DNA from: Dicyema japonicum
Lineage: Eukaryota; Animalia; Dicyemida
DNA length: 64,000 bases
NCBI GenBank assembly: GCA_011109175.1
Contig: RDEW01000010.1
Location: 355,837-419,836, forward strand
Reading direction: 5' to 3'
The notes under the pieces were generated by a model, which made no database searches, was not told the DNA's origin, and saw only the letters and a program-made list of their open reading frames with translations. A program made the position numbers and the translations under genes. Within the stretch, counting starts at the first letter, position 1. Each line of letters opens with the position of its first letter. This document shows, one piece after another, positions 48,590-48,895 of the stretch.

Positions 48590-48895
48590 TTAATTTGTTG
48601 AAGTTTTATTCTTGCTTGTCTGTTCTCCTCTCTCTTCCTAATAGAGTGGCGTCATGTGATCCACCTGTCTAAGTGACGCCCAGTGCCAGGCCGGCACGAA
48701 AAAGGATCATTTGCTCTTCCCCACTCCACTGGAGGTGTTTCCACAACTGCATGTAATGGACGTCTTACCTTTTATGCTGATTCCAGATGGACTCTGTTTC
48801 TGTAGAAGTGGACACTTGATACACTTAATTAGTTGGTTACTTTAACTTCTTTCTCGGTGTATCCGGGTTAATAATAAATAAATAAAAATAATAAA
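48590..48895 (+). mobile_element. SINE family B
   Basis: Pyrimidine tract, fold at 48648-48709, tail ctcggtgtatccgggttaataataaa. Confidence 0.85.
48648..48709 (+). ncRNA. HDV-like ribozyme-type fold (candidate, best-preserved copy)
   Basis: P1 ggcgtca/tgacgcc, P2 tgatcc/ggatca, P4 tgcc/ggca, possible ctg/cag inner pseudoknot, unpaired CGAAAAA. Confidence 0.55.

Follow-up and report, generated by a model that had tools for sequence, protein, structure and literature searches.

A head-less copy of an abundant composite SINE in Dicyema japonicum carries a LINE-derived, delta-type fold probably kept as a structural module

Does the ribozyme-like fold carried by a short repeat of Dicyema japonicum cut its RNA and define the 5′ end of the element, or is this fold kept for another role? 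The question is raised by a non-coding element of ~300 nt (its ATG is followed at once by TGA) that lies at positions 48590-48885 of a 64-kb stretch of AT-rich animal DNA (32-44% GC), hereafter the window. The initial annotation had described it as a partner of a LINE analogous to the trypanosome RIME, NARTc and SIDER elements, possibly with a new HDV-like variant. Our analysis leads, with a probability of about 0.6, to the view that 48590-48885 represents a member, devoid of its head, of a composite SINE family of huge abundance, in which the fold is kept as a cis-acting structural module and not as a cutter that defines the 5′ end.

The 62 bases quoted by the initial annotation as its best example were located exactly at 48648-48709, in copy 48590. 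Six copies had been reported in the 64 kb. An nhmmer profile built from the three best copies (48590, 33810 and 57880) and run on the window matched all six named places and added three more, giving nine copies in total:

48592-48885 (+): copy 48590, E = 2.5e-103
33806-34100 (−): copy 33810, 89% identity to copy 48590 (nhmmer match 34099-33806, E = 8e-101)
57867-58172 (−): copy 57880, 78% identity to copy 48590 (nhmmer match 58151-57867, E = 1e-85)
56150-56538 (+): copy 56150, diverged, with a different tRNA-like head (nhmmer match 56227-56517, E = 2e-23)
58681-58915 (−): copy 58690, old and diverged (nhmmer match 58895-58713, E = 5e-14)
29847-30107 (+): copy 29820, old, with the tail kept and most of the fold deleted (nhmmer match 29867-30098, E = 4e-10)
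29120-29481 (+): copy 29120, diverged, with the same head type as copy 56150 (nhmmer match 29188-29454, E = 1.5e-21)
44654-44730 (+) and 3732-3644 (−): fragments of the family matched by nhmmer

Three of these copies (48590, 33810 and 57880) are well kept. Copy 57880 represents a subfamily that has ATC/GAT in P3, a T at G1 and a T at the putative catalytic C, while copy 33810 sits in the tail of a LINE derivative and retains part of the family head upstream, to ~34125. The profile also matched both ends of a LINE on the minus strand (3′ end at 34215-34139 and 5′ end at 35762-35662). Copy 29120 adjoins a match to the Rfam 5.8S rRNA model (28897-29046, minus strand; 49.4 bits for a gathering score of 42), a match that could stem from an rRNA pseudogene or belong to a repeat.

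Contigs from four runs of one sample were aligned to positions 48498-48947 at 80% likeness, which gave between 3,970 and 21,068 aligned pieces per run. The copy number of this family is very high, as shown by the nine copies of the window and by the 21,068 contig pieces aligned in a single run, it being understood that contig-based depth gives neither copy numbers nor true 5′ ends. No target-site duplication was found at copy 48590, and copy 33810 shows one weak candidate of 11 bp (ATTAAAAAATT) in A/T-rich sequence. The SINE copy is absent from three Octopus sinensis loci (66 kb), which have only old repeats of ~75% identity in common with the window. One such old repeat, found at 45045-45290 and 24244-24476, has ~75% identity to Octopus sinensis contigs (L001 15708-15862, L002 18170-18413) and is the only clear DNA similarity to the Octopus sinensis loci compared. 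Two metagenome scans with SINE patterns gave no match. The window also contains, at 38224-38601 on the minus strand, an intronless ORF of 125 aa that resembles Snf7/CHMP4 (atlas score of 0.97 to Snf7 clusters) and could be either a first exon or a retrocopy.

Copy 48590 can be divided into five modules:

48590-48647 (+): T-rich leader ending in a polypyrimidine-TAG, upstream of the predicted cut and aligned in nine copies
48648-48709 (+): HDV-type double-pseudoknot fold, 62 nt
48710-48800 (+): body homologous to the LINE 5′ region, whose LINE counterpart codes for the leader peptide before the 2A
48805-48872 (+): LINE-derived 3′ tail with a long-range stem
48868-48899 (+): (TAAA)n-like, A/T-rich 3′ end, left out of the contig alignment as a repeat

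The leader that the initial annotation had noticed upstream of the predicted cut is indeed a feature of the family. At least 50 nt upstream of G1 (48648) are common to the nine-copy alignment, where a polypyrimidine run ending in TAG is also seen, and a pyrimidine run followed by YAG stands directly before G1 in eight of the nine copies, old ones included. In the contig alignment, the family-majority leader is T-rich and has no run of four T, as would be expected of a Pol III transcript.

Copy 48590 is devoid of the family head: the loose ends of the contigs before 48590 give the continuation ...GGCGCCATGTGGTGCTGCGTGG, and copy 33810 shows this same upstream continuation (gccatgtggtgatgcgtggc). 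Copies 56150 and 29120 are preceded by another upstream unit, in which strings resembling the A and B boxes occur; visual inspection showed such strings at 56150-56215 as well as in the loose-end consensus. Neither ARAGORN nor Rfam called a tRNA in either head type, and the head is putatively a Pol III unit derived from a small RNA. In the MFE fold of a full-length copy (33812-34125, minus strand; 48620-48740, plus strand), the leader UAGAGUGG, G1 and G2 included, pairs with CCACUCUA, which directly follows the fold on its 3′ side, and the polypyrimidine CCCCUCU pairs with GGAGGGG. This predicted clamp between leader and body would compete with the first P1 pairs; its covariation among the copies of the window is not convincing.

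Both ends of the SINE are related to a LINE located on the minus strand. This element is considered as an internally deleted derivative since Pfam found no RT in it, and its parts are as follows:

34128-35755 (−): internally deleted LINE of ~1.6 kb, with fold, 2A-like leader, APE fragment and 3′ tail
35697-35755 (−): fold at the LINE 5′ end, the ATG in J1/2 opening the leader-2A ORF
35749-35525 (−): 2A-like leader
35422-35099 (−): APE fragment (broken)
34215-34128 (−): 3′ tail

The leader ends in the 2A-like motif CGDVETNPG(M), 35 codons ahead of the broken APE, and a protein search returned no usable relatives of the leader-2A ORF or of the APE ORF. The 5′ body of the SINE (~160 nt) matches the LINE start at 35755 on the minus strand (profile positions 51-158 against 35762-35662), and the local alignment of the region extending from just upstream of G1 to ~48800 with the ~150 nt that begin the LINE scores 68, the best of 300 shuffles reaching 41. 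The resemblance of the 3′ end to the LINE end, already pointed out in the initial annotation, is real and longer than had been stated: the last 76 nt of copy 48590 agree with the LINE 3′ end (34128-34215) at 59 of 79 positions (75% identity), with a score of 73 compared to a maximum of 37 in 300 shuffles. The four-G tail quoted at the time belongs to copy 33810, copy 48590 having ccggg.

The SINE tail contains a stem of ~10 bp formed by CTTGATACAC (48815-48824) and GTGTATCCGG (48857-48866). The pairing involves CTGGATACAC and GTGTATCCGG in the SINE, and CUGGGAUCACC and GGUGUUUUCGG in the LINE. This stem is present in the RNAfold MFE structures of copy 48590 and of the LINE tail, the MFE of copy 33810 being a different fold, and it would correspond to the 3′ hairpin usually recognized in stringent LINE/SINE pairs.

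The element at 34128-35755 is the intermediate type required by Kojima's model of SINE birth. It belongs to a head-to-tail chain on the minus strand (33800-36600), in which a LINE 3′ part (RT at 36589-36284, tail at ~35860-35790) is followed by the deleted LINE (35755-34128) and then by the SINE (34100-33806). Each element of this chain lies in the (TAAA)n-like tail of the preceding one, which suggests that such tails are favored insertion sites or that co-transcription occurred by read-through. At 14482-14549 on the plus strand, a further 3′ end of LINE type (GGGATCAC...GGGGTTAATAAAATTAAAA) belongs to the tail family of these elements and has no adjoining SINE body.

The fold itself comprises, in copy 48590, the helices P1 (GGCGTC/GACGCC), P2 (TGATCC/GGATCA), P3 (ACC/AGT), P1.1 (TG/CA) and P4 (TGCC/GGCA), with CGAAAAA in J4/2. 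Parsed by hand, its strands follow the order P1-P2-P3-P3′-P1′-P4-P4′-P2′, i.e. a nested double pseudoknot, and RNAfold recovered P1 and P4. Covariation was analyzed for 21 pairs (P1, P2, P3, P1.1 and P4) in the eight complete instances of the window, half of them decayed, which corresponds to 162 pair cells. Standard pairs occupy 80.2% of these cells compared to 31-48% in six slid controls, in which the partners were moved by 1-3 columns. Changes on both sides of a pair concern nine cells from six pairs, a number reached by three of 500 shuffles; more generally, the paired percentage, the number of double-change cells and the covariation score were each reached by one to four of 500 column shuffles.

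The comparison of the LINE with the SINE gives the same picture. In P2 and P4, the eight changed bases make up four whole pairs, all of them Watson-Crick (A-U to G-C, U-A to C-G, C-G to U-A and G-C to U-A), without any one-sided change, a pattern with a probability of ~2e-5 under a simple placement model. The loops have diverged (five of six positions in L3 and four of five in the P4 loop), whereas among the joins J1/2 (ATG) is unchanged and J4/2 (CGAAAA) is one A shorter. P1 is weak in the LINE copy, with five pairs of which three are G-U.

Several details that the initial annotation had read from the sequence were found again. P3 covaries, with ACC/GGT in copy 33810 and ATC/GAT in copies 57880 and 29120, and a C-G to U-A change in this helix is seen in three copies; the P4 loop varies freely across copies; and the inner CTG...CAG pairing is present in three of them. 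Furthermore, P2 is rebuilt as AUAUU/AAUAU in copy 56150 and is also rebuilt in copy 3620. The P3 mismatch of copy 48590 is private to it, as an A>G change at 48672, found in 98% of the family depth, restores P3 (GGT), and the main P1 polymorphism (48676, A/G, 45%) keeps a U-A or a G-U pair either way. From the paired excess over the slid controls, the compensatory changes between LINE and SINE, the rebuilding of P3 and P2 and the family-majority letters, we conclude that selection acts on the helices of the fold, at least for the SINE masters and the LINE lineage. The fold was inherited from the LINE, where compensatory changes maintain it.

A covariance model made from the eight folds found no further complete instance in the window. 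Our own loose helix descriptor was dropped, as it gave 54-95 matches in shuffles, as many as in the window. Similarly, an HDV-like layout at 48940-49009 on the minus strand (G-U at the base of P1, long P4, no C in J4/2) was attributed to chance, shuffles matching as often.

As to the 5′ end, the initial annotation considered that cleavage does not define it in the inserted copies, and our observations agree. All nine SINE-type copies of the window keep the leader upstream of G1, and neither a pile of ends nor a listed loose-end cluster was found at 48648 among more than 21,000 contig pieces, which define ends poorly. The contig depth falls gradually upstream of G1; we attribute this fall to alignments broken by indels in the polypyrimidine run, with which it coincides, since the sequence of the loose ends at 48625 and 48634 is that of the reference leader. 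In the LINE copy, ~25 nt separate the preceding tail from G1.

The putative catalytic residue, C50 (48697, within the CGAAAAA of J4/2), is also kept in the LINE copy, and a C of catalytic type followed by GAA is found in copy 48590 and in ~80% of the family depth. A T replaces it in 15-22% of the family depth and in copy 57880, the level at the other three CpG sites of the fold being 6% or less. Since copy 57880 carries this T together with the markers of its subfamily, masters of the T type, which lack C50, have evidently been amplified and spread.

The HDV core has a G1-U wobble at the base of P1, a P1.1 of two G-C pairs and a reverse wobble between U and G in L3 (U20/G25), and its J4/2 reads CGAA. 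The core of the present fold is non-canonical: G1 pairs with C33, P1.1 consists of U19-A35 and G20-C34 without a spacer after P3, and L3 (UGUCUA) has an A at the position of the HDV G25. No match to the Rfam delta family was obtained at the gathering score on the whole window, nor with E values up to 10 on stretches of 200-700 nt, these models being narrow and unable to hold pseudoknots. What stands of the proposed HDV-like variant is a delta-type helix order supported beyond chance; its core departs from the canonical one and is not matched by Rfam. Cleavage in the SINE is not supported by these data, and the fold is a putative ribozyme.

It is nonetheless conceivable that the ribozyme is active in the SINE too and that, in the manner of NARTc or Leishmania SIDER2, it cleaves SINE or host read-through RNAs at G1, the copies with a leader then arising from uncleaved RNA. 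The complete delta topology, the G at +1, a J4/2 that reads CGAA as in HDV, the covarying helices and the presence of the same fold at the head of a LINE would all fit such an activity. Furthermore, ribozymes of the L1Tc/ingi clade that depart from the strict delta consensus, with an atypical P1 and a P1.1 of 1 bp, are active in vitro (PMC3185411, PMC4035085). However, none of the nine copies starts at G1 and no ends are piled there, a subfamily without the catalytic C has spread, the base of P1 is G1-C instead of G-U, and L3 has neither the spacer base nor a G of the U20/G25 type. The Rfam delta models remain silent even at E values up to 10, and a ribozyme located behind a SINE head would truncate the SINE, i.e. 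behead it (Kojima 2018, PMC5786205). We therefore regard an active cutter in the SINE as unlikely.

It could also be argued that the fold reflects shared ancestry only, the SINE carrying LINE 5′ sequence whose pairings are not selected. The structure was derived from the same sequences on which it was then scored, which inflates the paired percentage, and old copies (3620, 58690 and 29120) break several pairs. However, the double changes of P2 and P4 are compensatory in four cases out of four and no single-sided change was found, P3 has gone from C-G to U-A, P2 has been rebuilt in copies 56150 and 3620, the loops diverge while the stems still pair, and sliding the partners brings pairing down to 31-48%; unselected pairings are thus very improbable. 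Even less credit can be given to the proposal that the polypyrimidine-TAG functions as a 3′ splice site and that the element is mainly an exon or a trans-splice acceptor cassette. It draws on the pyrimidine run and YAG that immediately precede G1 in all copies but one; however, T-rich linkers are common behind SINE heads, and the avoidance of T4 runs in the family-majority leader fits Pol III read-through instead.

According to the reading that we favor, a cis-acting structural module in a composite SINE, a full-length member would consist, in this order, of a small-RNA-like head, a T-rich linker, ~160 nt of a LINE 5′ end and ~76 nt of a LINE 3′ end. The 5′ part would come from a single-ORF 2A-APE LINE, its first 62 nt forming the double pseudoknot of hepatitis-delta type, and the 3′ part would provide a stem of ~10 bp and a (TAAA)n-like tail. 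The proteins of the LINE would copy the SINE in trans by recognizing the 3′ stem-loop. The fold would be retained in the SINE as a cis module of the LINE RNA, involved in protein binding, stability or handling of the 5′ end, self-cleavage being weak or absent in the SINE context. Cleavage in the SINE may be slow or regulated, and it is purely by inference that proteins could be proposed to bind the 5′ module. More tentatively, the delta-type pseudoknot might act as a second, 5′ recognition signal for the LINE machinery, its catalysis lost or throttled, which would make these SINEs parasites with two signals (5′ knot and 3′ stem-loop).

Because its full-length members carry a further head upstream, the family can be assigned to the SINEs of head + LINE-5′ + LINE-3′ type (Kojima 2018, PMC5786205). 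The analogy with RIME, NARTc and SIDER holds in so far as the element combines a 5′ signature and a 3′ tail that both come from a 2A-APE LINE; however, an extra leader and a head lie upstream, so that the element does not start at the LINE 5′ end. SINE bodies derived from Vingi or RTE 5′ ends and ending with LINE 3′ tails have already been described, e.g. SINE2-1_ACar and SINE2-1_AMi, and in one example Vingi positions 2-74 directly follow a tRNA head (PMC5786205). In these SINEs, as in the present family with its putative tRNA-type head, such a head is followed by at least the first 70 nt of a LINE 5′ end and then by a LINE 3′ tail, and they would originate from an internally deleted bipartite LINE, such as the derivative found in the window at 34128-35755. 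However, they come from reptiles and their 5′ part of Vingi origin was described without any RNA fold, whereas here this part contains a covarying pseudoknot of delta type. Vingi is not among the six LINE clades listed with ribozymes (PMC5786205), and our literature search found no link of Vingi 5′ ends, or of octopus, to a ribozyme.

It is well established that LINE 5′ ends can carry delta-like ribozymes and that NARTc, RIME, SIDER and R2 SIDEs share them (PMC3185411, PMC4035085, PMC3414825). The L1Tc/NARTc and ingi/RIME/SIDER systems of trypanosomatids (PMC3185411, PMC4035085) resemble the present one in several respects: their LINE has a single ORF in which an N-terminal 2A immediately precedes the APE, its first ~77 nt contain an HDV-like fold found again in short non-coding partners that also share the 3′ end, and P1.1 is short. 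A mollusc element of the Ingi clade with an active N-terminal 2A is also known (PMC3708506). In trypanosomatids, however, the elements begin with the fold itself and in vitro cleavage at +1 has been demonstrated, whereas the SINE described here has a leader of at least 58 nt and a head upstream of the putative ribozyme. The R2 SIDEs are likewise internally deleted and non-autonomous, keeping a 5′ ribozyme and a protein-bound 3′ UTR (Eickbush and Eickbush 2012, PMC3414825), but R2 is site-specific in rDNA, has an RLE-type endonuclease and has its 5′ end defined by the ribozyme. With the HDV, CPEB3 and drz families of Rfam, the fold shares the helix order (P1-P2-P3-P1-P4-P2), a P3 of 3 bp and a C followed by purines in J4/2; it differs by the lack of a covariance-model match, by the G1-C pair at the base of P1 and by a P1.1 made of U-A and G-C directly after P3.

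The new point is therefore modest: a covarying fold of delta type inside a SINE of head + LINE-5′ + LINE-3′ architecture. To this, the present work adds the letter frequencies at the family level, the finding that T is in excess at the putative catalytic C, the 5′ continuation showing that copy 48590 is head-less and the link to Kojima's model.

This family, in which a delta-type fold is kept behind a SINE head, constitutes a natural test case for Kojima's beheading argument, and it is so abundant that covariation could be analyzed over thousands of sequences. Should the fold cut, it would be a built-in limiter of SINE or host transcripts. If it does not, a ribozyme fold would have been re-used as a structural or recognition module, which bears on the design of engineered Vingi donor RNAs, built with both UTRs (PMC13708176). 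Finally, if the reading with two signals proves true, it would provide an RNA-structural reason for the conservation of some LINE-5′-derived central bodies of SINEs.
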